From Macrostomum lignano (taxonomy: Eukaryota), in assembly GCA_002269645.1 (NCBI GenBank), contig NIVC01001817.1:124001-188000 (forward strand): a stretch of 64,000 bases of DNA, in the 5' to 3' direction. This document shows positions 2,457-54,450 of the stretch, piece by piece. The position numbers were made by a program, and so were the translations under genes. Under the pieces are notes generated by a model. The model was not told the DNA's origin. It saw only the letters and a list, made by a program, of their open reading frames with translations, and did not search any database. Each line of letters begins with the position of its first letter. Within the stretch, counting starts at the first letter, position 1.

Positions 2457-4790
2457 TCGACAACGTCATCTTCGAGGCCTTTTGCAGAGCCCTGGAATCC
2501 AGGGCCACACACCCTCACCTTGTCCGGTGGATCATGTTCATGATCCGGAACCGCACTGTTGTGGCCCACCTGAACGGCAGCTCTCTTCGGCGCCTGTCCA
2601 GAAAGGGGGCCCCAGGGCGGAGTTCTCACGCCCGTTCTCTGGAACATGGTCATGGATGAGTTGCTTTGCAGTGATCTCCACGACCCCATTCTCAAGGTGG
2701 GCTATGCCGATGATGTGACCGCGATATGCGCGGGCTCCTCGGTTGATACCATCAGAGACCTTCTGCAGGGCTTTCTAGGACGAGCGGAGCGTTGGGCAAA
2801 CCAATGTGGCCTTAGACTCTCAGAGTCGAAAACCACAGCGGTCATGTTTATCAACAAACTGATCTGGACCATTAAGCCCCTCACCCTCTATGGAAAGAAC
2901 ATTTCCATGGAGAAGCAGGTCCGCTGCCCGGGCCTCACTCTGGACCACAGGCTCAACTGGACTCCGCACATTCAAACTAAAGCTTGGAGAAGCAGGTCCG
3001 CTGCCCGGGCCTCACTCTGGACCACAGGCTCAACTGGACTCCGCACATTCAAACTAAAGCTTGGAGAAGCAGGTCCGCTGCCCGGGCCTCACTCTGGACC
3101 ACAGGCTCAACTGGACTCCGCACATTCAAACTAAAGCTTGGAGAAGCAGGTCCGCTGCCCGGGCCTCACTCTGGACCACAGGCTCAACTGGACTCCGCAC
3201 ATTCAAACTAAAGCTTGGAGAAGCAGGTCCGCTGCCCGGGCCTCACTCTGGACCACAGGCTCAACTGGACTCCGCACATTCAAACTAAAGCTTGGAGAAG
3301 CAGGTCCGCTGCCCGGGCCTCACTCTGGACCACAGGCTCAACTGGACTCCGCACATTCAAACTAAAGCCAAAAAAGCCCTGGTGTCTGGCTCAGATCAGG
3401 CGCGCCGTGGGCACCACCTGGGGGCTCACCCCCAGGAAGCTGTGGTGGATTTACACTGCCATTATCCGCCCCTCGATCAGTTACGCCAGCCTCGTGTGGG
3501 CTAGCGGTCTGGGCGTCAAGAGCAACCTCGACGCTCTCTACAAAATCCATGGCAGAGCCTGCCGCATGACTATGGGCGCTCCACCCTCTACTCCTTTTGA
3601 AGGCATGAATTCCTTCCTCTGTGCCCCTCCTCTGGATATTTATATCAAAGGAGAGGCGGCGAAGAGCACCCGGCGTCTTCTGGATGCTGGGGTGGCCTTC
3701 AAAAAAGTGCGGGCCTTTAAGAAGCGGTCGCTTATCCCGCACTCTGACCTCTGCCTCAAGGCTCTCGAGGAGTGTGGCGGGCTTAACATCCTCACGGACT
3801 CAATCCCTCTGCCGCAGCACCGCCAGCTCCAGGTCCGTCCTGGACTGCAACACCCAGCTCAACGGGCTTGCGCTAGGCAACCAGGTGGAGCTCAGATGGA
3901 TCCCGGGCCACGCCGGCTTCGTCGGCAACGAGCGCGCTGACCTGCTGGCCAAGGCTGGCTCCGCCGGCGCGCTGCTGGGGCCGGGCCTGGGAGCCCCCAT
4001 CCCCGCCTCGGTGATCAACTCCCGCGTTAAGCGCTGGACTGACTCCGAGCATCTCCGCAGGTGGCACGACACCCGGAATTGTAGGCAATCCCGTGCGGCC
4101 GTCCCCTGCCCCTCTCCTCTCCTGCGTAGAGCCCTCCTCAGGCTCAACCGCAGAGACCTCAGAGCAGTTAGCATGGCCCTCTCCGGGCATGGCTGCTTCT
4201 CTCGCCACCGCTTCCTTCAGGGCCAAGTACCCGAGGAGCGGTGCCCCTTCTGCCGCTCAGGCAGTGAAAACGCCGAGCACTTTATCTGCCACTGCCCGCG
4301 GTTTTCACCAGGGCCAGGCTCACTCACCTCGGGCCAAACCCGGTTCTCTCCGACGTTTGCAGGCCCGAGAGCATCCCGCTGCTCGCCCGGTACCTCAGGG
4401 ACACGGGTCGAGCTGAGTTCTTCCCCACCACCGGTGAGGAGGACCGCGCTGCAGGCGAGACTGACGGGTCCCCCTGAGCGACGTACGTCACTTCGATGGA
4501 AGTCTTTGGTCGCCAGGGGCTAGCGGAATGGGCGGTCTCCTCCGCCTCCTCGCTGCATCCGCCGGACGCCCCCTGCAGCTAAGTCAAAGTGTACAACCCC
4601 TCTCGCCAAACACGCGCACTCACTAGGCCCAAATCCAGCAGCCCCCTCGGGAGTGCTAATTAAGCTGGTTCGCTGATCGGCATGCCTCAGAGCAAACCAT
4701 GCAAAAGCATTTGCCGACATCGTCCACGCGCTGCGACAATTAGGCCCATTCCACCGACTCCAGGGCACAATGTAAGCTAAAGCTTCATTG
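2457..4790 (+). mobile_element. 5'-truncated, frameshifted non-LTR retrotransposon (RT + partial RNase H + CCHC; LOA/R1/I group)
   Basis: RT motifs FDNV, PQGGVL, YADD, KT.AVMF; RNase H C-terminus WIPGHAGFVGNERADLLAKAG; zinc knuckle [19 protein letters not shown]. The N-terminal part of RNase H is missing after TDSIP. Confidence 0.9.
2908..3369. repeat. 77-bp segment of the LINE RT present in six tandem copies
   Basis: Identical ORF starts recur every 77 bp (2907, 2984, 3061, 3138, 3215, 3292). Confidence 0.95.
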
Positions 4791-11800: not shown

Positions 11801-14800
11801 ATCCTAGACTTGACTTGCTAATCTTCAACGCATCATCATCATATTTTCGCACCCGCCAGGCCACAAGCACTTCAACCTATTTCCTCGCAGTATCAGCGAT
11901 CTGGCCGCCAGATTTCGGGTGTCGGAGTTTCATCTGACCCTCAGCCAGGGCTACTGGAACCATGCAGCCTGGGGCTACGCCAGCCAGCCGCAGCCGCAGG
12001 GCGCCGAGCTTTGGGCTTGGCTAGGAAGTCACGGCTCAGAATCGGACAAAGTTGAATCGAATTGGCGCGAGTTTGTCTCAGCCGTGTCCGGTATGTTCTG
12101 CGCGTCGGTTAACGCTATGGCTACTGGGGCGGTGGCCACCAGTCCCGCATGGAGCTACCGACCAGAGGGTCTGTCTCAGCGTGGCCGCGAGCCGCGGACC
12201 CTGCGACTAGCCCAGATTGTCAATCAAGGCGTTTGCACGGAAAATCTGACACCCTGGTCGCGTCTGTTGCCATGCAAAAAGCAGGCTGGTATTGGACAGT
12301 TATTAAATGCTGTTAAATTGCACGATTCGGCTTATAATTCGGTGCAGGTGCACTTTAAACCCACGCATCGGGGCTTAGCGTTGAGACTGGCATTTACGGC
12401 TGTTATTGACAGACGAATTGCTCAGCTGGGCAAGGCTGACTGGTGAGTAAAAAAAATTTTTCTAGTAGTTGTAAATGTAACTATATTGAATTATATGGTT
12501 TTGAATAAACATGTGTGATAAAGTTGTGAATCATTCACCTGTGTGATAAAGTTGTGAATCATTCACCTGTGTGATAAAGTTGTGAATCATTCACCTGTGT
12601 GATACAGTTGTGAATCATTCACCTGTGTGATACCGTTGTGAATCATTCACCTGTGTGATACCGTTGTGAATCATTCACCTGTGATACAGTTGTGAACCAT
12701 TCACCTGTGTGATACAGTTGGGAACCATTCACTTGTGTGATACAGTTGTGAACCATTCACCTGTGTGAAACAGTTGTGAACCATTCACCTGTGTGATACA
12801 GTTGTGAACCATTCACCTGTGTGATAAAGTTGTGAAACATTCACCTGTGTGATAAAGTTGTGAAACATTCACCTGTGTGATACAGTTGTGAACCATTCAC
12901 CTGTGTGATACAGTTGTGAACCATTCACCTGTGTGATACATTTGTGAGCCATTCACTTGTGTGATAAAGTTGTGAACCATTCACTTGTGAGATACAGTTG
13001 TAAACCATTTACCTGTGTGATACAGTTGTAAACCATTTACCTGTGTGATACAGTTGTAAACACTTCACCTGTGAGATACAGTTGTGAATCATTCACCTGT
13101 GTGATACAGTTGTGAACCATTCACCTGTGTGATACAGTTGTAAACACTTCACCTGTGTGATACAGTTGTGAACCATTCACCTGTGTGATAAAGTTGTAAA
13201 CACTTCACCTGTGTGATACAGTTGTGAACCATTCGCCTCTTTGATACAGCTGTGAGCCTTTCACTTCTGTGATACAGTTGTGAACCATTCACCTGTGTGA
13301 TACAGTTGTGAATCATTCACCTGTGTGATGCAGTTGTAAACCATTCACCTGTGTGATACAGTTGTGAATCATTCACCTTTGTGATGCAGCTGTGAACCCG
13401 ACTGTTATATTAACCCGCACGCCTGTCCGTCTCACCCAGGTCAGTTCACAGTCTCCTCAGCCGAGCCGTGTCCTTGCCCTGCTCCCTGGCAACCGGCCAA
13501 ACCGGTTCTCGCCTGTTGGTCTTGAAGCGAACCGCCCCAGACCCTGACCAATCAGCTGTGCAGCCCGAGCCGCTGCAATCGTACAACTTGGCCAATGGGC
13601 TCAAACTATTGGACTACAATCTCACTAAAATGTTGGATGACGAAGCCAAAGATTCTGTGGATGTGAAATTTAATTTTCCCTGGACTTGGGTGCCAGTCGA
13701 AAGGCTGCAGTCGCCACCTGTTGTTGCGCAGAAGTATCAGGTTAGATAGCGAATCTCAGTAGTTCACTGCTACTGAAATACGACTACTACTATTAATAAT
13801 ACTTATAGTATAGTAGTACTTCTTTAGTAGTATATTGTGTAATACAGAATATAGATATAGAATATAGTGTCATACTATACTAGTACTACTACTACTACTA
13901 CTACTACTCTTACCTACAAATTATCATTAATATTTTCACAGATCGGCACAGGCAGCGAGATGGGAGGAGTTGTAGTTGCTATTAGCAACCGGCATCCAAG
14001 TCAAGCAATTAACGTTATCATACTGGAGATTGTGCCCTGGCAACTAAGGATGCTGTTTCACACGCTGGAATTGACGCTGGGAGATAACTTGGCTCACAAA
14101 GCCAATAAGGTAGGAGAGTAGCGCTGTGTATTGTATTGCTGAGATGGTTTTTATCAGAGCAGAGCTAAGGTAGATTAGAGGCGAAACAGAGGCCTGGTTA
14201 TGGGTAATTCAGAGGTAGATTATGGGCGGATCGGAGGGTAGTTTAGGGGCGGATCGGAGGGTAGATTAGGGTCAGATGGGAGGGTAGATTAGGAGTGGAT
14301 CAGGGGGTAGATAAGGAGTGGATCAGAGGGTAGATTAGAGTGGATCAGAGGGTAGATTAGGAGTGGATCAGAGGGTAGATTAGGAGTGGATCGGAGGGTA
14401 GATTAGGAGTGGATCAGAGGGTAGATTAGGAGTGGTTCAGAGGGTAGATTAGGAGTGGATCAGAGGGTAGATTAGGGTCAGATCGGAGGGTAGATTAGAG
14501 GCGGATCAGAAGTTAGATTAGGAGTGGATCGGAGGGTAGATTAGGAGTGGATCGGAGGGTAGATTAGGAGTGGATCAGAGGGTAGATTAGGGTCAGATCG
14601 GAGGGTAGATTAGAGGCGGATCAGAAGTTAGATTAGGAGTGGATCGGAGGGTAGATTAGGAGTGGATCGGAGGGTAGATTAGGAGTGGATCGGAGGGTAG
14701 ATTAGAGGCGGATCAGAAGTTAGATTAGGAGTGGATCGGAGGGTAGATTAGGAGTGGATCGGAGGGTAGATTAGGAGTGGATCGGAGGGTAGATTAGAGT

Positions 14801-15620
14801 GGATCAGAGGGTAGATTAGGGGCGAATCAGAGGGTAGATTAGGAGTGGATCAGAGGGTAGATTAGGGGCGAATCAGAGGGTAGATTAGGGGCGAATCAGA
14901 GGGTAGATTAGGAGTGGATCAGAGGGTAGATTAGGAGTGGATCAGAGGGTAGATTAGGAGTGGATCAGAGGGTAGATTAGGAGTGGATCAGAGGGTAGAT
15001 TAGGAGTGGATCAGAGGGTAGATTAGGGGCGGAACAGAGGCAGATTAGGGCGGATAAATCAGATGCAAAAACATGTGTATACATAAAAAATCGCCCCAAC
15101 CCCCCAGGTGCACTACCAGCAAAGCGTGGACCGGGTCAGGCCAGCCAAACTCGAACTGTTAGTAACCGTGCCGCCCCGAACCAGCCTACGCGTGAGCTAC
15201 CGTTTCACAAAGCAGCTGGTTCGATGGAACGAATTCCCGCCTGACGCAAATCACGGCCTGTACCTGCCGCCAACCGTCGTGTCATTTGTTGCACCATCCG
15301 ATTCGAGTCTTCGCCTGCCAGTGCTGCCCCAGACGGTTCTGTCCATCGCCGAGTTGACTGCTAACAGAAACGCCACTACTCCAGAGCCAATATTCGTCCG
15401 CCTGTACACCGAAGCTCTGCTAGTGAATGCGCCTAAACCGGATTTCAGCATGCCCTACAATGTACTGTGCTTAGTTTGCACTGTACTGGCTATTGGTTCC
15501 GGTTTCATGCACAATGTCGCCTGCAAACTGGCCTCGGTTTCCAATCCGAATCCGGCGGACAAGGACGCCACTTTGATGGGGCGATTGAAAAAAATGCTGA
15601 CGCCATGGCGCAGGCAATAG
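5818..15620 (+). CDS. PIGT: GPI transamidase component PIG-T; join(5818..6016,11860..12442,13440..13740,13942..14109,15108..15620), about 587 aa
   Basis: Signal peptide, FSEELV, HFNLFP, EFHLTLSQGYW, CTENLTPW, PPDANHG, PDFSMPYNVLCL. All introns are GT-AG with consistent phases (1,2,0,0). Confidence 0.95.
6289..7100. mobile_element. Non-autonomous TIR element (Mutator/Foldback-like MITE) in PIG-T intron 1
   Basis: Long inverted arms starting GGCAGTGCTTATTTAGCCGGC; 9-bp direct repeat AAAATAAAA at 6280-6288 and 7101-7109. Confidence 0.85.
10640..11695. repeat. 12-bp minisatellite AATATGTAGGTC in PIG-T intron 1
   Basis: Read directly from the sequence. Confidence 0.95.
12510..13400. repeat. 28-bp minisatellite GTGTGATACAGTTGTGAACCATTCACCT in PIG-T intron 2
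   Basis: Read directly; unit contains the inverted motif GTGAA..TTCAC. Confidence 0.95.
14200..15050. repeat. 23-bp minisatellite GAGGGTAGATTAGGAGTGGATC(A/G) in PIG-T intron 4
   Basis: Read directly from the sequence. Confidence 0.95.
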
Positions 15621-15633
15621 AATCTAATAATTA

Positions 15634-15855
15634 GGTAAACGGCGGGAGTAATCTAATTTTAAATAAGTAATTTTTATACTTCGCCATCTGATTAGGTCTA
15701 AACTTCAGGTAAATGGCCGGAGCAGCTATCTATTAGCATATAAAGCGGTATTGCCTCGCCATCTAATTAGTTTCTTATTTTATGTGAAGATTGGGTAAAC
15801 AGCAAGAGTAACTATCTGTAAGGTATAAACCGTTGATGCCTCGTCATCTAATTAG
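15634..15855 (+). repeat. Three tandem degenerate copies of a 62-nt 28S rRNA segment (R2 target region) at 15634-15695, 15708-15770 and 15794-15855
   Basis: Arms GGTAAACGGCGGGAGTAA and ATGCCTCGTCATCTAATTAG match the conserved eukaryotic LSU sequence recalled from memory. Confidence 0.85.
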
Positions 15856-16384
15856 CTATAAAAGCAATTTCTGGAAAAAGCATTTTCGGTTCCTTAAGTA
15901 GGAAAGAAATTGAGAAGAATTTTTGTGTTACTTGTATCAATTTGCTTTGTTTTCTCATTTTTGTATTTTTCCTTATTCTGTTAAATCTTTCTCTTGTGTT
16001 GTCAGTGAGCAACGATGCTGTCAGTGAAATAACTATATTTACTTGAATTAAAAAAATATTCTTCGCGTTTAAAATATACTGCTGTCCTAAGAATAAAAAT
16101 CTATCCAATTTTCTCAAATGCCAAAATTGCACCCGTTATGGTGCGCCTCTTCAATTTGCTGCCTTTGCTCTATCTACTGTTCCTTTCTGTTACAAGTAGT
16201 ACAGTACACTGAAATTTGAAGGCTTATTGCTTCTGTCAAACATGAGTCAGTAAAATGAAATAAATATACGAGCTTCGAGCGTAGTGTAGCCGCTGACTTT
16301 TTGTTAATTATAGTTGCTAAAAATTCTGAAACCTGTTTAACTACTGACTGCAGTTGAAAATTCTGTTGTTTGTGGGGTTTTGTA

Positions 16385-17168
16385 TTGGGGGCTGAGGGGC
16401 GATTTTTTTATTAGGGAGTGAAGGGCGATTCTTTTACCGGGGACTGCGGGGCAATTCTTTTATTGGGGACTGAGGGGCGATTCTTTTATTGGGGACTGAG
16501 AGGCGATTCTTTTATTGGGGACTGAGGGGCGATTCTTATATTGGGGACTGAGGGGCGATTCCTGTATTGGGGACTGAGGGGCGATTCTTTTATTGGGGAC
16601 TGAGGGGCGATTCCTTTATTAGGGACTGAGGGGCGATTCCTTTATTGGGGACTGAGGGGCGATTTTTTTATTGGGGACTGAGGGGCGATTCTTTTATTGG
16701 GGACTGAGGGGCGATTCCTGTATTGGGGACTGAGGGGCGATTCTTATATTGGGGACTGAGGGGCGATTCCTGTATTGGGGACTGAGGGGCGATACTTGTA
16801 TTGGGGACTGAGGGGCGATTTTTTATTGGGGACTGAGGGGCGATTCTTGTATTGGGGACTGAGGGGTGATTTTTTATTGGGGATTGAGGGGCGATACTTG
16901 TATTGGGGACTGAGGGGCGATTTTTTATTGGGGACTGAGGGGCGATTCTTGTATTGGGGACTGAGGGGCGATTCTTGTATTGGGGACTGAGGGGCGATTT
17001 TTTTATTGGGGACTGAGGGGCGATTCCTTTATTGGGGACTGAGGGGTGATTTTTTATTGGGGACTGAGGGGCGATTCTTTTATTGGGGACTGAGGGGTGA
17101 TTTTTTATTGGGGACTGAGGGGCGATTCCTTTATTGGGGACTGAGGGGTGATTTTTTATTGGGGACTG
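16385..17168. repeat. 25-26 bp minisatellite GAGGGGCGATTCTTTTATTGGGGACT
   Basis: Read directly from the sequence. Confidence 0.95.
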
Positions 17169-20162: not shown

Positions 20163-20977
20163 TCAGCACAGCCCCTTCAGCAGAGCAACTTCAGCGTCGC
20201 TCAGAGCTCTCTCTGACACTCCGAAGCATCTCATGAAGCCCTCGAAGACGCGGTTGTGATCGGCACTGCGAGTGATGGCTCCGATCTGCACGTTGCTGCC
20301 GAAGTTCGCGCACGAGGTCAAAGCGGTAGCCGAGCCGCTGGTGGCCTGTCGAGTTCCGTTGACGAGGATCCTGATTTCCGGTGTCTGCTTGTCGTACACC
20401 GCGGCGATGTGGGTCCAACCGCTGGCCGTGTCGGTGAGTCCGGACACTGAGACCCTCGATGCAACATGGAACATGATGTCGGCAGCCGTAGGAAAAAGCC
20501 AAAACCGAGTGTGGCATGAAGAAGGCATGGTGAGGCCCTCCAGCAGAGGCATCGAACCTCTCGCTAGGCTGGTGACCTTGACCCACACTGACATGCTGAG
20601 GCTGGTGAGACACACTGAAGTCAGCTGGTCAATGTTGAACCACTCTGACACACCCGACTGACCAGTGAAGTTGACGGAGCTGTCCGTGTACTGCATCGGG
20701 ATGTTCTCCTGCAGGTCGAGATGGCCGCTGTTCGAGACCGCATTGCGAGTCCGAGTGGCGTTGCTCATGGGCCAGAAGGCGACGAGGCCGAGCTGACGAA
20801 GTGACGAAGCTGAGAGCACAGGAAGGCGCAAATGAGGGCGCTCGAGGCCGCCAGCGAGTGCTGCGGAGTCTGCGGCACCACGCAGCCGCCGAGCGAGATG
20901 TTGCTGTGCAGCTCGCTGCCGGCTTGGGTGATGGCGGGCAGGACGAAGAGAATGAGCAGAAGAGGAAAGCTGCTCAT
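20163..20977 (-). pseudogene. Intronless secreted LamG/concanavalin A-like domain gene with a frameshift (about 268 aa if repaired)
   Basis: Signal peptide MSSFPLLLILFVLPAITQA lies in one frame; LVAFWPM, SMSVWVK, WTHIAAVYD, ILVNG, FEGFMRCF, ALSDAEV lie in another. The two frames join if an 8-bp duplication is removed. Confidence 0.75.
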
Positions 20978-21599
20978 TTTGCTGTTGCAACAGTTCTGTC
21001 TGCTGACTTTTTTAATGAATGGAGGAATGAAGAAAAATTTTTGGCCTGCTTTCTCGTCCTGCTAATATGCTAATATTGCATCCATCAGCCAATCCCCTTC
21101 CAGTTCCGTAGATTCGTTTTCGCGCTGGTTTGAGGGACCTTAATTGGCGCATCAGTTTTCTGAATTATCGTTCCTAGCGATCCGAGTAGGAAGTTTTTCT
21201 ATTTCCTGTGAGTGTTTTTTTTAAGTTATTATTTGTTCCCCAGGAACTTTATAATTGCATGTCGGTGCATCTACAGGAAATCTACAAATTAATTACAGGG
21301 AAGGGATGGGAATAGGAATGATTGAGACTCCCGATGAGGAATGCTTGTTCAAAAAGGAGAATCATCTCGGAGTCGCGGCCGGTTGAAGCTTTGGCTTTTC
21401 GAAGAGTTTCGTCTAGATGAGTTTCTTCAAGATCGAAGGCAAATCACACAGTAAATGACTTCCGCTTCACATGCAGGTAGATGGCCTATTTTGCATTATG
21501 TACGTCATAGTTGAATTTTCAGTAGAGCCAGAAGTACTTGAGGTACGCTTGGTCAGCGACGAAGCTTTAAAAAATAGCACTGAGATTTTTTCCGCACAC

Positions 21600-23087: not shown

Positions 23088-23970
23088 GGGACTGAGTGGC
23101 GATTTTTGTATTGGGGACTGAGGGGCGATTCTTTAATTGGGGACTGAGGGGCGATTCTTTTATTGGGGACTGAGGGGCGATTCTTTTATTGGGGACTGAG
23201 GGGCGATTCTTTTATTGGGGCGCGACTGAGGGGCGATTCTTTTATTGGGGACTGAGGGGTGATTCTTTTATGGGGACTGAGGGGCGATTCTTTTATTGGG
23301 AACTGAGGGGCGATTCTTTTATGGGGACTGAGGGGCGATTCTATTATTGGGAACTGAGGGGCGATTCTTTTATGGGGACTGAGGGGCGATTCTATTATTG
23401 GGAACTGAGGGGCGATTCTTGTATTGGGGACTGAGGAGCGATTCTTTTATTGGGGATTGAGGGGCGATTCTTTTATTGGGGACTGAGGGGCGATTCTTTT
23501 ATTGGGGACTGAGGAGCGATTCTTTTATTGGGGATTGAGGGGCGATTCTTTTATTGGGGACTGAGGGGCGATTCTTTTATTGGGGACTGAGGGGCGATTT
23601 TTATATTGGGGACTGAGGGGCGATTCTTATATTGGGGACTGAGGGGTGATTCTTTTATTGGGGACTGAGGAGCGATTCTTTTATTGGGGACTGAGGGGCG
23701 ATTCTTTTATTGGGGATTGAGGGGCGATTCTTTTATTGGGGATTGAGGGGCGATTCTTTTATTGGGGATTGAGGGGCGATTTTTATATTGGGGACTGAGG
23801 GGCGATTTTTATATTGGGGACTGAGGGGCGATTTTTATATTGGGGATTGACGGGCGATTTTTATATTGGGGATTGAGGGGCGATTTTTATATTGGGAATT
23901 GAGGGGCGATTTTTATATTGGGAATTGAGGGGCGATTTTTATATTGGGAATTGAGGGGCGATTTTTATAT
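23088..23970. repeat. 25-26 bp minisatellite, same family and orientation as 16385-17168
   Basis: Read directly from the sequence. Confidence 0.95.
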
Positions 23971-24566
23971 TATGTATACAAAGCCAAGAAGCACAATTGG
24001 GAAATTCCGTATCAAAACAGTTTGGCGTGAAATTATTTTGCTTCCAATGTAAACAAGCAGGTAAAAGAATACTATTACGAGCGCAGGTTTATTTACAAAC
24101 TAATATTCTATAATAACGCGTACATTCAATCACAAGAGTCTTAGAAATGAAAATTATTTGACCAGAAATTATGAAAATCAATTCTAAACAGGTGCATATT
24201 AATCAATAATTCGATTCGTATTTAATAATACATGCAATATACAGGCATACATTTAATACACCCAACAACCAATAGTTATAATAATAGTAGGTTATATAGT
24301 ACGTAAAAATATAGTAAAATGTTAATAAAAACACAATTTTTGATCGCAACTTGGGCAAGCTTAGAGGAAGACAATTTAAATAAAAAATGTAACAACTAAA
24401 AAGACAAATGTCACCGCCGATTTACCAATGAAAGATAATTTTTTTACAACGGAATGAATGATACAACACAGTAGAGTCATGCAAGCGCATTGAAGTGCAA
24501 ATGTATTTGAGAAAGAATTTTAAATCTATGTTGACATTAGGATGGTCTGAGTGATCGTAAAAGAGG

Positions 24567-25251
24567 ACTGAGTGGCGATTCTTATCAGTGACTGAGTGGC
24601 CATTCTTATCAGTGACTGAGTGGCGATTCTTATCAGTGACTGAGTGGCGATTCTTATCAGTGACTGAGTGGCGATTCTTATCAGTGACTGAGTGGCGATT
24701 CTTATCAGTGACTGAGTGGCGATTCTTATCAGTGACTGAGTGGCGATTCTTATCAGTGACTGAGTGGCGATTCTTATCAGTGACTGAGTGGCGATTCTTA
24801 TCAGTGACTGAGTGGCCATTCTTATCAGTGACTGAGTGGCCATTCTTATCAGTGACTGAGTGGCCATTCTTATCAGTGACTGAGTGGCCATTCTTATCAG
24901 TGACTGAGTGGCCATTCTTATCAGTGACTGAGTGGCCATTCTTATCAGTGACTGAGTGGCCATTCTTATCAGTGACTGAGTGGCCATTCTTATCAGTGAC
25001 TGAGTGGCCATTCTTATCAGTGACTGAGTGGCCATTCTTATCAGTGACTGAGTGGCCATTCTTATCAGTGACTGAGTGGCGATTCTTATCAGTGACTGAG
25101 TGGCGATTCTTATCAGTGACTGAGTGGCGATTCTTATCAGTGACTGGGTGGCGATTCTTATCAGTGACTGAGTGGCGATTCTTATCAGTGACTGAGTGGC
25201 CATTCTTATCAGTGACTGAGTGGCGATTCTTATCAGTGACTGAGTGGCGAT
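24567..25251. repeat. 24-bp minisatellite GAGTGGC(G/C)ATTCTTATCAGTGACT, about 28 copies
   Basis: Read directly from the sequence. Confidence 0.95.
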
Positions 25252-25384
25252 TTGTATATATTCGTATATAACTTCCGAAATAACGAATGAAAGAGGAAAA
25301 GACAAATGAGGTTAAATCGAATTCGCATAAGCGGTGGAAAAAAATTATCAACAGCGGGAATCGAAACATGTAATTGCTTTAAAG

Positions 25385-27805
25385 CTAAACGTCCGGTTCA
25401 GCGTCGTCCTTGGTTCGAGCCTTGGCGTAAACCAAATCCCATCGATAGGGAAACCTGGAACAACAGAATCGAAAGCAATTCCTACAATAGCCTTCGTGGA
25501 ATGGATTAAAGGCGTCGGATGACAAATACTTGAGATAGCTAATCCGTTCGCGAGACACCTGCTCCCAGGTGGTGGAATTGCTACATGCCAGGTAACAGTG
25601 GAACAGGCCCAAGAATAGCAGCGGCACGCCAGATATCAGGGCGATGCCCAGGCCGCCAACGTAGGGCCAGTTGAACCAGAGCCATCGGCCTGGCTCCGTG
25701 TGCTGCTCCATGGACTGCCTGCGGGGGGACATGCGTTACAGGGCGATTGTTGTAGGAAATGAGGGGCGATTTTTGTAGGTACGGAGGGGCGATTTTTGTA
25801 GGTACGGAGGGGCGATTTTTGTAGGTACGGAGGGGCGATTCTAGGTAGGTACTGAGGGGCGATTCTAGTAGGTACTGAGGGGCGATTCTTGTAGGTACTG
25901 AGGGGCGATTCTTGTAGGTACTGAGGGGCGATTCTTGTAGGTACTGAGGGGCGATTCTTGTAGGTACTGAGGGGGCGATTCTTGTAGGTACTGAGGGGCG
26001 ATTTTTGTAGGTACTGAGGGGCGATTCTTGTAGGTACTGAGGGGCGATTCTTGTAGGTACTGAGGGGCGATTCTTGTAGGTACTGAGGGGGCGATTTTTG
26101 TAGGTTCGGAGGGGCGATTCTTGTAGGAAATGAGGGGCGATTCTTGTATTGTGGAATGAGGGGCGATTCTTATCTTGTGGACTTAGGGGCGATTTTGAAA
26201 GGTAGACTGAGGGGCAATTCCTGTATTGGGGACTGAGGGGCGATTCTTATCTGTGACTGAATGGCGATTCTTATTAATGGCTGAGTGCCGATACTTATTT
26301 AAAAACGAGTGGCGATTGTTAAAGAAGACTGAGGGGCGATTCTCAGGGGATTAAGAGGCCAATTGTAATACTAGCAGATCGTCAATTCTAAGTTACTGAG
26401 GACAATCTAAAGAAACACAAAGCTGGTTTTTCATTCGTTCAAGCTACTAATAGTAGGATCACAACCAACCAGAGCAATCCGACAGTCCAACAGTTGAGCA
26501 CAAACTGGCAAACAATGAATGCCAGGAATAAAGAGTGATTCCGCTCGCCGATGCAGTTCTCCACCCAGGGACAGTGATGATCGAATCTGGCCACGCATCT
26601 GTGACAGTCTTCGCAGTGACGCGATCTCAGCGGCTGCTCCTGCATGCAGTGCCGACAGAATCGTAGCTGAACAACCGACTCGACAGGCGGCGCAGCAGCA
26701 GACGGCATTTGGATCTTCTTCGTTTTGTTCTTCTTCTGTCTGCTCGGCAGTTTCTTCTTGGTAGACAGCAGGCCCCGGCCGATTCCAACGCCTAGGCTAC
26801 CGGCTCCGCCGTTATGCACGGAGCTCAGCATCCCGGATGTGCTGCGAATGTCGTCTTCATCCTCATCGGTGTCGCCTTCAGACTCGTCATTGTAGCAGAC
26901 TTCGTCTATATTGGACTCAGCTTCCAGATCCGCGTCTGCACTGTCCAGCTCGTCATCGGATGCTGAGCTCGTGCGAGCGTTCGACTGAGGTAAAAAGGTA
27001 AGTTTTCTATTAATCCAGGACTTATGATATAATCTGATGACTCTGGATCTAATCTAAGGGTTTTGGAATCTAATATGGGGTTTTGGGATCTAATCTGATG
27101 ACTCTGGATCTAATCTAAGGGTTTTGGAATCTAATATGGAGTTTTGGGATCTAATCTGATGACTCTGGATCTAATCTAAGGGTTTTGGAATCTAATATGA
27201 TAATCTAATATCTGAGGATCTGGGATCCAATCTGAGGATCTGAGATCCAATCTGAGGATCTGGGATCCAATCTGAGAATCTGGGATCTAATCTGAGGATC
27301 TGGGATCCAATCTGAGGATCTGAGATCCAATCTGAGGATCTGGGATCCAATCTGAGGATCTGGGATCTAATCTGAGGATCTGGGATCCAATCTGAGGATC
27401 TGAGGATCTGGGATTAAATCTGAGGATCTGGGATCCAATCTGAGGATCTGAGGATCTGGGATTAAATCTGAGGATCTGGGATCCAATCTGAGGATCTGGG
27501 ATCCAATCTGAGGATCTGGGATGGAATCTAATGTGGGAATCTGAGATGTACGTCTCTAATCTAATAATTGGAGATCTGGAACTGCATAGGTGCCAACTCA
27601 CAGGCAACATGTCCTTAGTAACGTAACCGGGATCAATCAGACTAGTAGCAAAGTACAGACAGAGAGTGACGGCAAACAGCAGCAGAAATGCCACTCCCTG
27701 GACAATGTCCCGATGAAAGAACAAATTAACGTGCAGCCTGGATGTGGACTTCACTAGCAGAGCAGCCAGTACACAGCAGCAGAGAGTGGCGTGGCCAATC
27801 CGCAT
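25385..27805 (-). CDS. ZDHHC12: DHHC palmitoyltransferase; complement(join(25385..25718,26470..26984,27602..27805)), about 350 aa; start codon uncertain
   Basis: [13 protein letters not shown]; [41 protein letters not shown]; SNSTTWE..RISYL..NPFHEG. These match the ZDHHC12 pattern and the splice phases are consistent. Confidence 0.88.
25760..26345. repeat. 23-bp minisatellite GAGGGGCGATTCTTGTAGGTACT in ZDHHC12 intron 2, degenerate at its right edge
   Basis: Read directly from the sequence. Confidence 0.9.
27020..27535. repeat. Composite minisatellite (about 20-bp CTGGGATCCAATCTGAGGAT plus a longer derivative unit) in ZDHHC12 intron 1
   Basis: Read directly from the sequence. Confidence 0.9.
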
Positions 27806-31327: not shown

Positions 31328-34300
31328 TCAAGACTTGTAGATGAGCACGGCAACCAGAGCGGCTAGAAAAGCCACAGCCAGTCCGAACACATAGTACAGC
31401 GGCACTTTAGTATTGACCACCCGATCAACGCCTTCCATCATCATTTCGGCTTCGTCAGCCGACATATCGTCCGGGGACGAGGCGGCCGAGTTGCTCTCCG
31501 CTTCCGGCCCGAAATTGACATCTTCCGGGGACAGATCGGTTGAAAAGAAATAAGCTAAGCGGTCCAGCACATCCTGCGACGTCTCCCCGGGAAAAGAATA
31601 GTCGGAGAGTACAGCCTGAGGACAGCGCGGGTGACGCACAAGTACGCGACGAGGCAGACGCAGGGCCGGCGATTTGCCTTCAACGAACAAGCCGCTAGAG
31701 ATGCTGAGCTCCTGAGCAGCCAGGTACAGCCTGGCGTCCAGGCCGCGGATTAGGTCGGATTTTAGGGCACGCGAGACGTCCAGGCCGGATGAGCCGGAGC
31801 GGATCAGGGCGAATAGCGGGAAACAGCCGGTCACCTGGGGGAGATGGGGGTTGGTACAGATCTTTCATAGACGCCGTTATGCCGGATGGATTTCATTTGC
31901 ATCAATAGCTATCGGAGTGAGTCTAGCTAGACAATAGAGTGACTCTCATTAAATAGTAGAATATAGGTCATTAAACAAACAGAGTGACTTGTGTTAGACA
32001 CTTGAGTGACTTGTGTTAGACACTTGAGTGACTTATATCAGACACTGGGGTGACTTATATCAGACACTGGGGTGACTTATATCAGACACTGGAGTGACTT
32101 ATTTCTGACACTGGGGTGACTTATATCAGACACTGGGGTGACTTATATCAGACACTGGAGTGACTTATATCTGACACTGGAGTGACTTATATCAGACACT
32201 GGAGTGACTTATATCAGACACTGGGGTGACTTATATCAGACACTGGAGTGACTTATATCAGACACTGGAGTGACTTATATCAGACACTTGAGTGACTTAT
32301 ATCAGACACTGGGGTGACTTATATCTGACACTGGAGTGATTTATATCAGACACTTGAGTGACTTATATTAGACACTTGAGTGATTTATATCAGACACTGG
32401 AGTGACTTATATCAGACACTGGAGTGACTTATATCAGACACTTGAGTGACTTATATCAGACACTGGAGTGACTTATATCAGACACTGGAGTGACTTATAT
32501 CTGACACTGGAGTGACTTATATCAGACACTGGAGTGACTTATATCTGACACTGGAGTGACTTATATCAGACACTGGAGTGACTTATATCAGACACTGGAG
32601 TGACTTATATCTGACACTGGAGTGACTTATATCAGACACTGGAGTGACTTATATCAGACACTTGAGTGACTTATATTAGACACTTGAGTTACTTATATCT
32701 GACACTGGAGTGACTTATATCAGACACTGGAGTGACTTATATCAGACACTGGAGTGACTTATATCTGACACTGGAGTGACTTATATCAGACACTGGAGTG
32801 ACTTATATCAGACACTGGAGTGACTTATATCAGACACTGGAGTGACTTATATCTGACACTGGAGTGACTTATATCAGACACTGGAGTGACTTATATCAGA
32901 CACTGGAGTGACTTATTTCTGACACTGGGGTGACTTATATCAGACACTGGAGTGACTTATATCAGACACTTGAGTGACTTATATTAGACACTTGAGTGAC
33001 TTATATCTGACACTGGAGTGACTTATATCAGACACTGGAGTGGCTTATATCTGACACTGGAGTGACTTATATCTGACACTGGAGTGACTTATATCAGACA
33101 CTGGAGTGACTTATATCAGACACTGGAGTGACTTATATCAGACACTGGAGTGACTTATATCTGACACTGGAGTGACTTATATCAGACACTGGAGTGACTT
33201 ATATCAGACACTGGAGTGACTTATATCAGACACTGGAGTGACTTATATCTGACACTGGAGTGATTTATATCAGACACTGGAGTGACTTATATCTGACACT
33301 GGAGTGACTTATATCTGACACTGGAGTGACTTATATCAGGCACTGGAGTAACTTATATCAGACACTGGAGTGATTTATATCAGACACTGGAGTGACTTAT
33401 ATCAGACACTGGAGTGACTTATATCAGACACTTAAGTGACATATCAGACACTGGAGTGACTTATATCAGACACTGGAGTGACTTATATCAGACACTGGAG
33501 TGACTTATATCAGACACTGGAGTGACCTATATCTGACACTGGAGTGACTTATATCAGACACTGGAGTGACTTATATCTGACACTGGAGTGACTTATATCA
33601 GACACTGGAGTGACTTATATCAGACACTGGAGTGACTTATTTCTGACACTGGGGTGACTTATATCAGACACTGGAGTGACTTATATCAGACACTTGAGTG
33701 ACTTATATTAGACACTTGAGTGACTTATATCTGACACTGGAGTGACTTATATCAGACACTGGAGTGGCTTATATCAGACACTGGAGTGACTTATATCTGA
33801 CACTGGAGTGACTTATATCAGACACTGGAGTGACTTATATCAGACACTGGAGTGACTTATATCAGACACTGGAGTGACTTATATCTGACACTGGAGTGAC
33901 TTATATCAGACACTGGAGTGACTTATATCAGACACTGGAGTGACTTATATCAGACACTGGAGTGACTTATATCTGACACTGGAGTGACTTATATCAGACA
34001 CTGGAGTGACTTATATCTGACACTGGAGTGACTTATATCTGACACTGGAGTGACTTATATCTGACACTGGAGTGACTTATATCAGGCACTGGAGTGACTT
34101 ATATCAGACACTGGAGTGACTTATATCAGACACTGGAGTGACTTATATCAGACACTGGAGTGACCTATATCAGACACTTGAGTGACTTATATCAGACACT
34201 GGAGTGACTTATATCAGACACTGGAGTGACTTATATCAGACACTGGAGTGACTTATATCAGACACTGGAGTGACTTATATCTGACACTGGAGTGACTTAT

Positions 34301-45044: not shown

Positions 45045-46025
45045 AAATATAGTTTTGATTTGAAATTATGAACAAGTGTTGTGACAAATCTATTTTAATA
45101 TTGATCCTGTTTTATTTCTTGAGAAATCAAATCAAAAGAAATTCAAATGAAATAAAAACATTTTTTAATTAAAACATCAAGTCAACTTAACAAAATGAAT
45201 AATACCTTAGTTTTTTTAACAAATAAGTACTACAAAGCACTTAGGCCCTAATGCTAAATTAGGGCTCATTTTCTATATTTTAATGTTAATTCTAATTAAT
45301 ATAGCCTACTTTAGCCTAGGCATAAAAAAACAAACTGGGGCACCAAAATGCAGGCACCAAAAAGTGTAAATACTGTCCAAGCATTCTGAGTCAATAAGCA
45401 ATTTAGATGATTTAGTTGTTTTTTCATAACCTATATATGACAATCTTAAATGAGTCATATAATGACTTTGGCTAGAGCCTTAAAGCTGTATGAATAGCAT
45501 TGTGTCTATAACTACTCCATTCTTATTAGTGTATATTTATTAAAATATGCATAGTTAAAATGTGTAATTAAGATAGTTTGTATATTTTAAAAATCAAAAT
45601 GTATGAGTTATTCATTTTAAGGAAATCAAATGTAGCTTTAAAAAATAGGCCTATGTCCTACTATTCAGTATTCATTATTCAGCAAGTTGGTAAAATCTGA
45701 TATTCCTTCTATCTCTACTAATAGATATCTTAATGATTGAGACAGGAGTAAGCCTAGTGCCTAGGCCCTATAAATTTTCAACTTTTGCACTCTTGTCATT
45801 TTTTATAATCTTTATAATCTAATTTATCATAATTGTATACATAGTTGTTTAATTGTCTAATCCCTATTGCAATATTGGAATCAAATCACTAAAAACTTAT
45901 AGGCATCACGCTATAAATTATTTCAAAGGGCTATATCTACATAGCCATATTAGAATAAGTGGCTTGGACACTCCTATGCAAGACAAAAAAGAATAAACTT
46001 ACTTATGTGCATGCATATACAACTA

Positions 46026-46614
46026 GGTAAATGGTAGAAATAACTCTGATAGTCTTATTAAGGCTAAATGTCTCATCATTTAGTTAGTACTATTTTTATA
46101 TTCTTTTTGGTTAGGCATTTTTGCAATTTATCCCTAGTCTATCACAATTTATAGTGCCTATATTGGTCAGATCAACTAGCAGTTATGTATATGTATTGAT
46201 AATGAAGATCTTGTCTAACCTTTATGCCTATTGACAATTGCCAAAAGTTATGATTTTCTAAAGAAATAGTTGAATATGCAAAACTAATTTTACTATTTTG
46301 TCATTTTTGTTAATGCAAGTATTTTCATTTTTTGGGTTGTTTTTTTTCAATATTAAATAATTCAATTTTTGAATTTACCTTGATTAGACCTTTTGCCACC
46401 TAGCCAAGTAGGCTAGGTTTGGGTGTTAGGTGTGTTTATATATAAGTATAAATATAGGTAGCAACCATATATATGCAATACCTGGCTGATCTAGCTAGCT
46501 AGTGAGAGTAAAGTTAAGTTGCAAAAATGCCTACTTATAAATAGACAAAGTACTAATTAGATGACAAAGCATTTAGTTTTAATAATATAGTAATAGTGAC
46601 TAATGTCATTTATC
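46026..46614. mobile_element. Foldback-like element whose inverted arms begin with the 28S-like 62-mer
   Basis: Forward copy 46026-46087 and reverse copy 46553-46614; the inverted match continues inward (TAGGCATTTTTGCAA / TTGCAAAAATGCCTA). Confidence 0.65.
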
Positions 46615-46982
46615 CAAAATTATATTATTGCAAAGTTTTTTCATAGGTAAGTTACATTTTTGGTCAAAAAATAAATCACATGGTTATTATAAATCAGTAT
46701 AAATCAATAATATAAATCAATTTGTCAATAGACATAAATATAAAAAATTGTTTAGAAATAAGAGAATTTGTTTATAGGCCTACTTAAATGCTAAAGTCTA
46801 GTCTAGTAATCTAGTCTAGTAATGATACTAGTTTAGCAATATTGGTCACTTAGTTTAGCTTATTTAGAATTGGTTCATGCGATTTTATATATAAGGCCTC
46901 AAGCACTTTTAGTCTATACTCATTTGTACTCAAAAGTGCTTGAGGCCCTGTACATAAAATCACGTAAACAAATTCTAAATAA

Positions 46983-47768
46983 GGCTCATTCCATATAAGC
47001 ATGGTTGTAACATGACAGGCTATTTTTACTTATAAAATGAAATATAATAATAGAATATACTAAACCAATATTTTAAATGAAAGATAATTTTGTCAAAAAT
47101 ATTTTTATAGTTTCATGTAGATATCATCATTAGTATAGATGCTATTAAACCTTGAATGGCACTTATGGTCGTAACAACAGGATTTTTGACATATAGAAAC
47201 TAAAAGGTAAAAGTCTTATAACATTTTTATTTTTGATATTTTGCAATACATTTTTTAAAATTTGACTAAGAACATCTTTAGTAATCATACTCTTTTTGTA
47301 GAATATATAAACTCAAAAAGGCAACAAAGATACAAAAGAAAAGGCAGCCTTATGGTCGTAACATTATGGTTGTAACATATTTTTTTTCTGTCAATTCAGT
47401 AACTTTGAGGTACCAATATATTAAAAATATAATAGATTATTTGGTCACCAATACTTTTATCTGATGATGCAAGTACTATACTTTTATCTATAGTTTGTTT
47501 CAACCTTCCAAAGCTTTCTATTTGTTTTTAAAAGGTACACAAACTTAATGATGTCTTTTGCTTAGAAAAATGTCTAAATTTTTACAAAAATGACTTTTTG
47601 CCACTTGATAGCATACTAATCTAACATTTTATCATTCATTTATTCTTAGATTGTAGATATTACACATAAAAAACATTTGGTAAAAAAATTGGCTGATAAG
47701 GCAATGGCAAGCAAAAATATTGACTTTTTTCTATTTTCCAAAAATGTCCATCTTATATGGAATGAGCC
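46983..47768. mobile_element. Probable MITE with 17-bp TIR GGCTCATTCCATATAAG
   Basis: Perfect inverted 17-mers at 46983-46999 and 47752-47768; TSD ambiguous. Confidence 0.65.
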
Positions 47769-47829
47769 ATAAGCAACTTTCCAATCATGGTTCTAGTGCC
47801 CTATGTGTATTCTAGGTATATACTTGTGC

Positions 47830-47844
47830 TTCTCTCTCTCTTTC

Positions 47845-47932
<88 letters not shown>

Positions 47933-47937
47933 TTCTC

Positions 47938-48015
<78 letters not shown>

Positions 48016-48020
48016 TTCTC
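47830..48020. repeat. (CT)n microsatellite
   Basis: Read directly from the sequence. Confidence 0.97.
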
Positions 48021-48377
48021 TTTATCTTTCCCCCTCATTGCAACTCAGTGAGTTCTCTGTTGGACTATGCAATCTATTGTTAATTTATATACAATTTCTG
48101 ACTTTTATTGACCCATTCTTGTCTAAATTGCTAAATATAAGTAAATAAACAAATAAATTATAACTAAATTTTAAAAGCATGAGGATGCCTGATGCAAGGC
48201 AAAATATGTTGCATAACAAAAAATGATAGCGCTCACATTTTTAATTTTGCTTATCATCAGACTTGCAAGTTGCAACTTTACTACAAAAATATTAGCTATT
48301 GAAGTACTAATAGACATAGGCAATAACATAATAGGTACAAGTTAAAAATGCATTTCTATTATCTATTATTAATTTTA

Positions 48378-48439
48378 GGTAAACGGTAGGAGTAACTATG
48401 ACTATAGTATTAGTGCTTAATGCCTCATCATCTAATTAT
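48378..48439 (+). repeat. Solo 28S-like 62-mer
   Basis: GGTAAACGGTAGGAGTAACTATGACT...AATGCCTCATCATCTAATTA. Confidence 0.85.
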
Positions 48440-48988
48440 TACTTATTAGACAGTTAAAATGTCTTTTAAGTTTGAATTTTTGTGACCTACCTTGGCCAGA
48501 CCTCTTACTCTCCATGTGACCCAATTGGAGGGTCAGCCAGGTGTTGGGCATGTATTTTCTGATAGTCTCTTTGCTACAGAGAATCTTTGGTAGCCTGTTG
48601 ATTACAAAAAAATTCTACAACCAAGTTTACTATTAGACTAGCTTTAAGACCCTAGCCATTAGAAAGATAGTTGTATACAAAATTTAAATAGTTATATCCA
48701 TGCTGCTATGTATACTGCTGGAAGTAGTCTCTAGACACACCAGTACTATGATTCATTTTATCCCCACCATCCAATCCTAGACTGCTTTATAATTTTTTTC
48801 AACAGCTAACCAATAGAAAAGCCAGCTTAGCTCATTCTTTGATAAAAAAGAATGTACAGTTTGTCAGTATAAAGTGTACACGCTGTCATCTATGTATATG
48901 CTTAACTCCGTTTCACTCATTCAGAGATTTCAATCTCAACCATCGTCCCAAACGATACAACAAAATTGTTCTATATCCTATTTGTACA

Positions 48989-54196: not shown

Positions 54197-54227
<31 letters not shown>

Positions 54228-54228
54228 G

Positions 54229-54273
<45 letters not shown>

Positions 54274-54293
54274 GCCTGTCCTGTCTGTCTGCC

Positions 54294-54326
<33 letters not shown>

Positions 54327-54395
54327 GCCTGTCCTGTCTGTCTGTCTGTCTGTCTGTCTGCCTGCCTGTCTGTCTGTCTGTCTTTTTGTCTTGCC

Positions 54396-54450
<55 letters not shown>

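Follow-up and report, generated by a model that had tools for sequence, protein, structure and literature searches.

Three short units directly after the stop codon of a gene for the GPI transamidase subunit PIG-T, and three further copies in the window (the whole 64-kb stretch of DNA that was analysed), are on balance probably members of an old interspersed repeat, the core of which was captured from 28S rRNA or rDNA and which was tripled locally beside PIG-T. The comparisons below show that this core is 28S-derived over its whole length, and a 62-nt 28S-derived core with a centre that changed early, and differently in two lineages, is an accurate description of the family. The copies scatter through the region, and the repeat is not a gene-specific device. 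The analysis of the family is based on six copies in two lineages from one 64-kb window.

The array downstream of PIG-T

The open reading frame of the last PIG-T coding exon ends in a TAG codon at 15618-15620, as read from the sequence, and the 13 nt that separate it from the first unit (15621-15633) read AATCTAATAATTA. A previous inspection of the letters without database searches (hereafter the sequence-only reading) had placed three copies of 62, 63 and 62 nt from 13 nt past the TAG, and these coordinates were reproduced when the sequence was read again. The features of this locus are as follows:

11919-12446: earlier PIG-T exon
15108..15620, + strand: last coding exon of the GPI transamidase subunit PIG-T/Gpi16 (Pfam PF04113, E = 3e-39, profile positions 435-567 of 571)
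15634..15695, + strand: c1, 28S-like core, 62 nt; arms kept, centre decayed and AT-rich
15708..15770, + strand: c2, 28S-like core, 63 nt
15794..15855, + strand: c3, 28S-like core, 62 nt

All three units have the same orientation on the plus strand, with spacers of 12 and 23 nt and start-to-start periods of 74 and 86 nt. The array was not called by TRF, because its copies are less than 70% alike. Relative to 28S, c1 is identical at 18/22 positions of the left arm, 6/20 of the centre and 16/20 of the right arm; c3 retains the complete right arm (20/20) and 19/22 of the left. A derived CGCC in the right arm is common to c1 and c2, and the spacers that precede these two units are also similar (TCTAATAATTA and TCTAAACTTCA). 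Since the earliest AATAAA or ATTAAA signals past the stop codon are found at 16047 and 16092, the array probably lies within the PIG-T 3' UTR.

The sequence around c1 has two further properties. The 13 nt that precede c1 are similar to the end of the right arm (ATCTAATTA), and the 12-nt spacer that follows it (15696-15707, GTCTAAACTTCA) to the beginning of the left arm. Additional units that have since eroded may formerly have belonged to the array.

A core derived from 28S rRNA

Real eukaryotic 28S sequences on metagenome contigs (L001-L004, L008 and L012) read GGTAAACGGCGGGAGTAACTATGACTCTCTTA, a single T and GGTAGCCAAATGCCTCGTCATCTAATTAG, then TGACGCGCATGAATGG; the single T is a variant that was selected by the search pattern. 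The LSU 62-mer on which the sequence-only reading relied is correct, as it matches the real 28S on these contigs. In the window, a left-arm pattern allowing up to 3 mismatches yielded 3 hits against 0.00 expected and a right-arm pattern 4 hits against 0.04 expected, far above chance, and a profile built from c4-c6 matches real 28S at E = 6e-14. The proposed derivation of the units from 28S is upheld by these results, and sequence comparison confirmed that c1-c3 are degenerate forms of the stretch of 28S that surrounds the R2 insertion site. Over all six copies, identity to 28S is 80% at positions 1-22, 39% in register at positions 23-42 and 88% at positions 43-62, and the earlier observation of kept arms and a poorly matching centre holds.

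The resemblance to 28S is restricted to this segment. When rDNA contigs were compared with the window by blastn, the matches were confined to the 62-nt units, and profiles of the flanks had no match in 9-11 kb rDNA contigs. The alignment of the profile to 28S ends at the edges of the core and the boundaries are sharp; neither profiles nor blastn with rDNA contigs detected collinear 28S similarity past the 62-nt segment. Extensions of the 28S likeness into the flanks that had been seen by eye (GTGAAGATT upstream of c3 and CAGCCA downstream of c4) were unsupported by profile searches. The whole window returned 0 Rfam hits at the gathering threshold and contains no rDNA other than the 62-nt units.

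The loss of helix 69 pairing, which the sequence-only reading had claimed, is also apparent: the helix 69 stem (GGGAGU / ACUCUC) can pair in 47% of cells, no better than in shuffles (50.5%) or in controls slid along the sequence (36-50%). A conserved RNA fold was found on neither strand, the RNAalifold consensus reaching only -0.3 kcal/mol with no helix 69 predicted. A genuine LSU rRNA gene or a long rDNA pseudogene is therefore out, since the similarity ends at the core and helix 69 is lost.

Copies elsewhere in the window

A profile search of the 64-kb window recovered three more 62-nt copies besides the array, bringing the total to six:

45984..46662: inverted pair of c6 and c5 with their flanks; arms ~45984-46255 and 46382-46662, roughly 65% identical
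46026..46087, + strand: c6, 62 nt, facing c5, in AT-rich intergenic DNA
46553..46614, - strand: c5, 62 nt, in AT-rich intergenic DNA
48378..48439, + strand: c4, 62 nt, 82% identical to real 28S over 62 nt
48440..48556, + strand: non-rDNA sequence 3' of c4 that is common to c5, with the blocks TTACTCTC and TCAGCCAGGTRTT..GCATRTAT

A sugar-transporter gene has its likely start codon ~550 nt downstream of c4, and c6 was recovered at E = 4e-4 by a profile made without it. The 28S-like core is present at four or more separate places and on both strands within 64 kb, and c4-c6 are located outside any visible 3' UTR. The presence of an array beside PIG-T, as reported by the sequence-only reading, is real; a tie of the units to the PIG-T 3' UTR is not supported, as c4-c6 lie elsewhere and on both strands. 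Its suggestion that the units exist as 3' UTR targets for small RNAs is likewise argued against by the copies in AT-rich intergenic DNA.

The inverted structure formed by c5 and c6 measures 680 bp, with no duplication seen at its ends, and is explained either by a tail-to-tail arrangement of two copies or by an inverted duplication at this locus. When the family was tested for MITE- or TIR-like organization, c4 and the array were found to stand alone and not as inverted pairs.

The copies share states that are absent from 28S. The derived arm states GGTAG and CTCATC are common to c4 and c6, and TAT is found at positions 31-33 in 5/6 copies; because these states are shared, the copies are shown to go back to an ancestor that had already departed from 28S, and not to 28S directly. 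In c4-c6 the core lies at the 5' edge of further non-rDNA sequence that these copies have in common, ~117 nt or more in length; together with the core, the shared unit measures ~180 nt or more. The likeness of the downstream flanks is significant in shuffle tests that exclude the core (c4-c5, p = 0.002; c5-c6, p < 0.002). Similarity of the upstream flanks was not significant in the shuffle test, and a larger element with a conserved upstream flank, suggested by eye from CTTAYTTATGTG, was rejected on the same grounds. The flanks of c3 have no significant match to those of c4-c6, so the array is linked to the other copies only via the core.

No hallmark of a transposon has been demonstrated for the repeat. 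ARAGORN identified 0 tRNAs in the window, and Rfam scans of the array and of 45900-48800 gave no tRNA, 5S or 7SL head at E <= 10 around the copies and nothing on any unit. A-rich stretches occur ~+165 to +235 nt from the core, with blurred boundaries and no clear poly(A) tail. Candidate direct repeats surround c4 (13/15 matches; p~0.1 against shuffles) and c5 (18/20 columns with one gap; p~0.1 against shuffles), and a search against shuffles found no significant target-site duplications around either copy. The imperfect repeats of c4 are at 48363-48377 and 48746-48760 (CTATTATTAATTTTA / CTATGATTCATTTTA) and those of c5, on the minus strand, at 46625-46644 and 46310-46328 (ATGAAAAAACTTTGCAATAA / ATGAAAATACTTGCATTAA). 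In both cases they are ~300-370 nt apart and are possible target-site duplications, at p~0.1 each.

Conservation of the arms and of the centre

The contrast between arms and centre differs among the copies. Compared with 28S, c3 matches at 39/42 arm positions and at 3/20 centre positions (p = 1e-9), but the low in-register score of its centre is largely due to an indel pair: the centre is the 28S sequence moved by a -5/+5 pair around a retained CT-GTAAGGTA. The 5-nt deletion offset by a 5-nt insertion, which the sequence-only reading had noticed in c3, is thus evident in the alignment to 28S. For c1-c3 the arms-versus-centre contrast reaches only p = 0.01-0.07 and is inflated by indels. In c5 and c6 the arms match 28S at 32-33/42 positions and the centre at 11/20 (p = 0.08-0.14), and the centres of c4-c6 agree with 28S in register at 10-11/20 positions (50-55%). 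Among themselves, c4-c6 match at 12-14/20 centre positions, which makes their centre as conserved as their arms (p = 0.12-1); in pairwise comparisons their whole core scores 0.65-0.77 versus 0.30-0.45 for the flanks. The idea of an unconstrained centre is not supported, since in c4-c6 the centre is conserved like the arms and still recognisably 28S-derived. Constraint on unit length and spacing, also proposed, holds in that all units measure 62-63 nt; strong evidence of constraint is not provided by one compensated indel pair in one lineage.

Substitutions in the arms are concentrated at CpG sites and many are CpG transitions, as expected for passive decay. The arm CpGs are better kept in the array than in c5 and c6. 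Between the two lineages, the arms are 68-78% identical versus 39%, a difference in favour of the arms for which passive decay alone does not account.

Relation to the R2 target site

The unit corresponds to positions -35..+27 in Bombyx R2 numbering, and the sequence-only reading was right that the units span the R2 / I-PpoI / Pokey site. The Bombyx R2 protein has a footprint of ~60 bp, about -40..+20, that comprises upstream and downstream half-sites (PMC11204384). That the boundaries of the core coincide with this footprint is notable and is not predicted by random capture. Two motifs have been defined for the Bombyx system: the RUM at -34..-22, with the consensus A-31 WWW GC NNN A-22, and the RASIN nick motif TTNANN/T, in which the slash marks the nick; any shorter distance between RUM and RASIN blocks R2 cleavage in vitro (PMC10499050). 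The left arm contains the RUM, as had been proposed, with -34..-22 at unit positions 2-14 and the consensus from A-31 to A-22 at unit positions 5-14.

Judged by the Bombyx rules, from which those of the host may differ, the RUM consensus is intact in c1, c2 and c3. Its GC is broken in the other copies, reading GT in c4 and c6 (C-26>T) and AC in c5 (G-27>A). The outer positions A-31 and A-22 are invariant in 6/6 copies; overall, RUM-critical positions are kept at 21/24 and non-critical positions at 40/54, which is not significantly different. Within the RASIN, A-3 is kept in register in 1/6 copies and T+1 in 0/6, and c3 carries GTAAGG/TA shifted 5 nt towards the RUM. The predicted loss of the cut site is accordingly seen throughout, the RASIN being absent in register in 6/6 copies. 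The units agree with the sequence-only reading's description of a putative R2 target that would not be cut, and this agreement remains a correlation.

R2-like or Pokey-like elements and rDNA were not found in the 64-kb window, nor were copies interrupted by an insertion, all arm hits in the 64 kb pairing into uninterrupted units. The sole retroelement in the window (2646-4523) encodes a reverse transcriptase and an RNase H, which is not the layout of R2. R2 is known from macrostomid flatworms, and planarians carry several further 28S-specific non-LTR elements.

Collections of metagenome, genome and viral contigs yielded no more members of the family. Among the metagenome matches, L009 is a diverged 28S-like sequence and L005 matches by chance; all others are either true 28S that carries a TTATGG variant or 28S copies that are interrupted or break off close to the R2 site. 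The genome and viral scans gave nothing, or the same 28S variant in a MAG. The variant 28S contigs (L001-L004, L008, L012 and L013, e.g., L013 6301-6362) are eukaryotic and carry CTCTTATGGTAGCC; the near-universal form of 28S at that site is CTCTTAAGGTAGCC. They stem from metagenomes of soil and other sources and, in one case, from the bin of a Sphingobacterium MAG; the A>T change falls on RASIN position -3, which is relevant to cleavage by R2Bm. On L007 (97-128 and 4320-4345), unrelated sequence meets the 28S right arm exactly at the nick, immediately before TAGCCAAATGCC, and the left arm is ~4.2 kb from the right arm. On L010 (775-805), unrelated sequence also abuts 28S, and the match starts a few bases further downstream. 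The L007 and L010 junctions look like R2-type insertions in eukaryotes. L006 and L011 are 28S with a truncated left arm.

Origin of the repeat and alternative explanations

The origin of such a repeat could be envisaged as follows. A piece of 28S would have been joined to the 5' end of a retroposed RNA, by template switching of a reverse transcriptase onto rRNA or by a similar capture; template switching is the most plausible route, given the sense orientation of the 28S piece and its place at the 5' edge of the unit that the copies share, and it has been proposed both for LINE-1/28S chimeras and for the 5S heads of SINEs. The chimera would then have spread through the genome, its nick-site centre being altered early in the history of the family. 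An intact R2 target would draw R2 insertions, and loss of the centre may represent an escape from these. One insertion beside the PIG-T stop codon would have been tripled locally, in a window crowded with tandem arrays (TRF lists 65 rows of minisatellites, among them arrays on either side of the last PIG-T exon). On the interspersed-repeat reading, the array probably has no dedicated role for PIG-T and rides in its 3' UTR.

Readings that assign the copies a role at the DNA level centre on R2. The units could be mimics of an R2-type target site that present both half-sites at native spacing and no nick site, and that would be bound uncut by the R2 protein or another rDNA-specific one, or would serve as additional landing pads for a relative of R2 with a changed preference at the nick. 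The extent of the unit (-35..+27 against a footprint of about -40..+20; PMC11204384), the uniform length of 62-63 nt, the intact RUM of c1-c3, and the invariance of A-31 and A-22 in all six copies are consistent with this idea, as are the loss in register of A-3 in 5/6 copies and of T+1 in 6/6, the displacement by 5 nt of TAAGG/TA in c3 (a shortened RUM-RASIN distance blocks cleavage in vitro) and the existence of R2 lineages in flatworms, the likely source clade. Yet half of the copies fail the RUM consensus (C-26>T in c4 and c6, G-27>A in c5), RUM-critical positions (21/24) are not kept significantly above non-critical ones (40/54), CpG decay explains the left-arm pattern equally well, the window lacks R2, rDNA and any interrupted copy, and the rules applied are those of a silkworm D-clade protein and not of the host's own element. 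Such mimicry is therefore quite unlikely. Its wider form, a dispersed family that would soak up R2 protein genome-wide or provide non-rDNA landing pads for a relative of R2 that differs in nick preference, is a slim prospect; if it were true, the copies may outnumber the rDNA units. Two conserved arms flanking a divergent core also bear a superficial resemblance to recombinase sites, and c5 and c6 form an inverted pair, as might be seen if the units were att-like sites for a site-specific recombinase or for a DNA transposon with this stretch of rDNA as its target. Neither arm is an inverted repeat of the other, however, the mobile-element reading frames of the window encode reverse transcriptase and RNase H only, with no recombinase or transposase gene, and target-site duplications are not demonstrated, all of which makes this reading extremely improbable.

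Other readings concern the source of the copies or an activity of their RNA. Fragments might have been repeatedly re-derived from variant or pseudogenised (orphon) rDNA, or from a small rRNA-derived RNA, and inserted independently. There are precedents in SINE28, which is "frequently rederived" from LSU rRNA (PMC4994717), and in mammalian 28S fragments with preferred start points that were retro-inserted (PMC13174262); moreover, the arms are nearer to 28S (80-88%) than to one another (69-79%), and the flanks of c3 are unlike those of c4-c6. Independent origins are nevertheless unlikely in view of the derived arm states shared by c4 and c6, the TAT at 31-33 in 5/6 copies and the non-rDNA downstream sequence common to c4, c5 and c6, and identical boundaries would require a discrete 62-nt source molecule, of which none is known. 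The position of the array, 13 nt past the stop and upstream of the first AATAAA/ATTAAA, together with its three copies in a single orientation and its arm CpGs, which are better preserved than those of c5 and c6, would suit a regulatory element of the PIG-T mRNA, the sense rRNA arms of which would titrate, or be targeted by, rRNA-directed small RNAs or snoRNAs, or would bind factors of ribosome biogenesis. Against this, the copies outside the array lie between genes or upstream of one, and one of them has antisense orientation; the units have neither a conserved fold nor an Rfam hit, and the contrast within c1-c3 is only p = 0.01-0.07 and indel-inflated, which leaves an mRNA element very unlikely. 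Conserved arms at fixed spacing around a freer centre would also fit bipartite pairing by an antisense RNA from the minus strand, which would pair with 28S to either side of helix 69 as a snoRNA-like guide or a primer-binding module, and c4 and c6, read as reverse complements, include a perfect C-box-like heptamer (ATGATGA). This heptamer is the product of a CpG transition in the 28S sequence itself, though, there is no D box (CUGA) or terminal stem, RNAalifold finds nothing on the minus strand, and no snoRNA or other family is hit even at E <= 10; an antisense RNA is thus scarcely credible. A minus-strand box C/D snoRNA in the strict sense was rejected, the C-box-like heptamer being limited to c4 and c6 and the D box being absent.

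Other features of the window

Minisatellites with units of 20-40 nt occupy 14209-15049, 16383-17168, 23088-23971, 24566-25252 and 25741-26343. A related G-rich minisatellite unit (GGGACTGAGGGGCGATTCTTTTATTG and variants) forms separate arrays at at least 5 places, including both sides of the last PIG-T exon, and these G-rich arrays look like a dispersed minisatellite family.

The retroelement fragment at 2646-4523 (with 2340-2456 and 2908-3368) has a GC content of 55-57% and encodes a reverse transcriptase (RVT_1) with an RNase H behind it. The RNase H part shares 87-88% identity with a segment of a Macrostomum lignano protein, which makes a macrostomid flatworm the likely source of the window. 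Internal tandem repeats in the fragment (77 nt x 6 and 16 nt x 7.3, each with 100% matches) are odd in a coding region.

Just past c5, at 46859-46983, lies a 125-nt near-perfect hairpin with 52-nt arms that are 87% complementary. It has sub-threshold matches to MITE-like miRNA precursor models (mir-5014, 48.8 bits against a gathering threshold of 101) and is probably a small foldback element.

Further coding fragments were recognised:

20163-20990, - strand: Laminin_G_3 / concanavalin-like exon
31328-31834, - strand: ODR4-like exon
48839-57945, + strand: MFS sugar transporter, three or more exons

In the protein collection searched, the Laminin_G_3, ODR4-like and MFS transporter fragments have no close relative, and the same was found for the exons of PIG-T and of the transporter.

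Comparison with known systems and significance

Sequences derived from rRNA are already known in mobile elements, as 5S heads, SINE28 and Pokey IGS repeats. SINE28 derives from the 3' end of LSU rRNA (PMC4994717) and, like the present family, consists of short dispersed LSU-rRNA-derived copies. SINE28 stays nearly identical to its source, whereas the family described here has a diverged centre and an internal 62-nt segment; a test for a SINE28-type origin placed this segment in the H69-H71 region and not at the LSU 3' end. The LINE-1/28S chimeras carry a sense 28S fragment at their 5' end, with a favoured region at 28S 3,636-4,115 (PMC13174262). Their layout is that seen here, with sense 28S at the 5' edge of the unit. 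The H69-H71 segment presumably falls inside this region of human 28S. Unlike SINE28 and the LINE-1/28S chimeras, the present repeat resides in an invertebrate host, probably a flatworm.

In comparison with the genuine R2 target in 28S rDNA, the unit covers -35..+27 with the RUM correctly placed, and c1-c3 fit its consensus, but the units lack an in-register RASIN, lie outside rDNA and carry no insertion. Some fish R2 lineages and R2Hm-B have 28S-like sequences in their 3' UTRs (PMC5035012), which are likewise degenerate 28S from near the R2 site that is carried by a mobile element. Those copies comprise ~110-130 bp upstream of the site and form the 3' end of a full R2, with genuine downstream 28S directly adjacent, whereas the units described here hold both sides of the site in one 62-nt piece that is followed by non-rDNA, with no R2 coding sequence nearby. 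A further parallel is offered by SINE superfamilies such as CORE, V, Deu, Meta and others, which have highly conserved central domains (PMC4824008). There, too, a block of ~60 nt is far better conserved than the remainder of a short repeat, but the heads of these SINEs derive from tRNA or 5S, and no rRNA-like character is reported for their domains, a comparison made by description only. The literature searched describes no 28S-like SINE domain or flatworm repeat of this kind, and a dispersed repeat that retains an R2-recognition core with a destroyed nick site is absent from it, including the table of rDNA-derived transposable element sequences in a 2024 review.

The significance of the family depends on whether its arms are under selection. 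If they are not, it is one more rRNA-derived repeat, the array beside PIG-T is an incidental local triplication, and annotators should mask this array and not call it regulatory. If the arms are under selection across the genome, the family would provide a natural means of testing whether hosts or other repeats can titrate the protein of a site-specific retrotransposon, and how relatives of R2 gain new targets.
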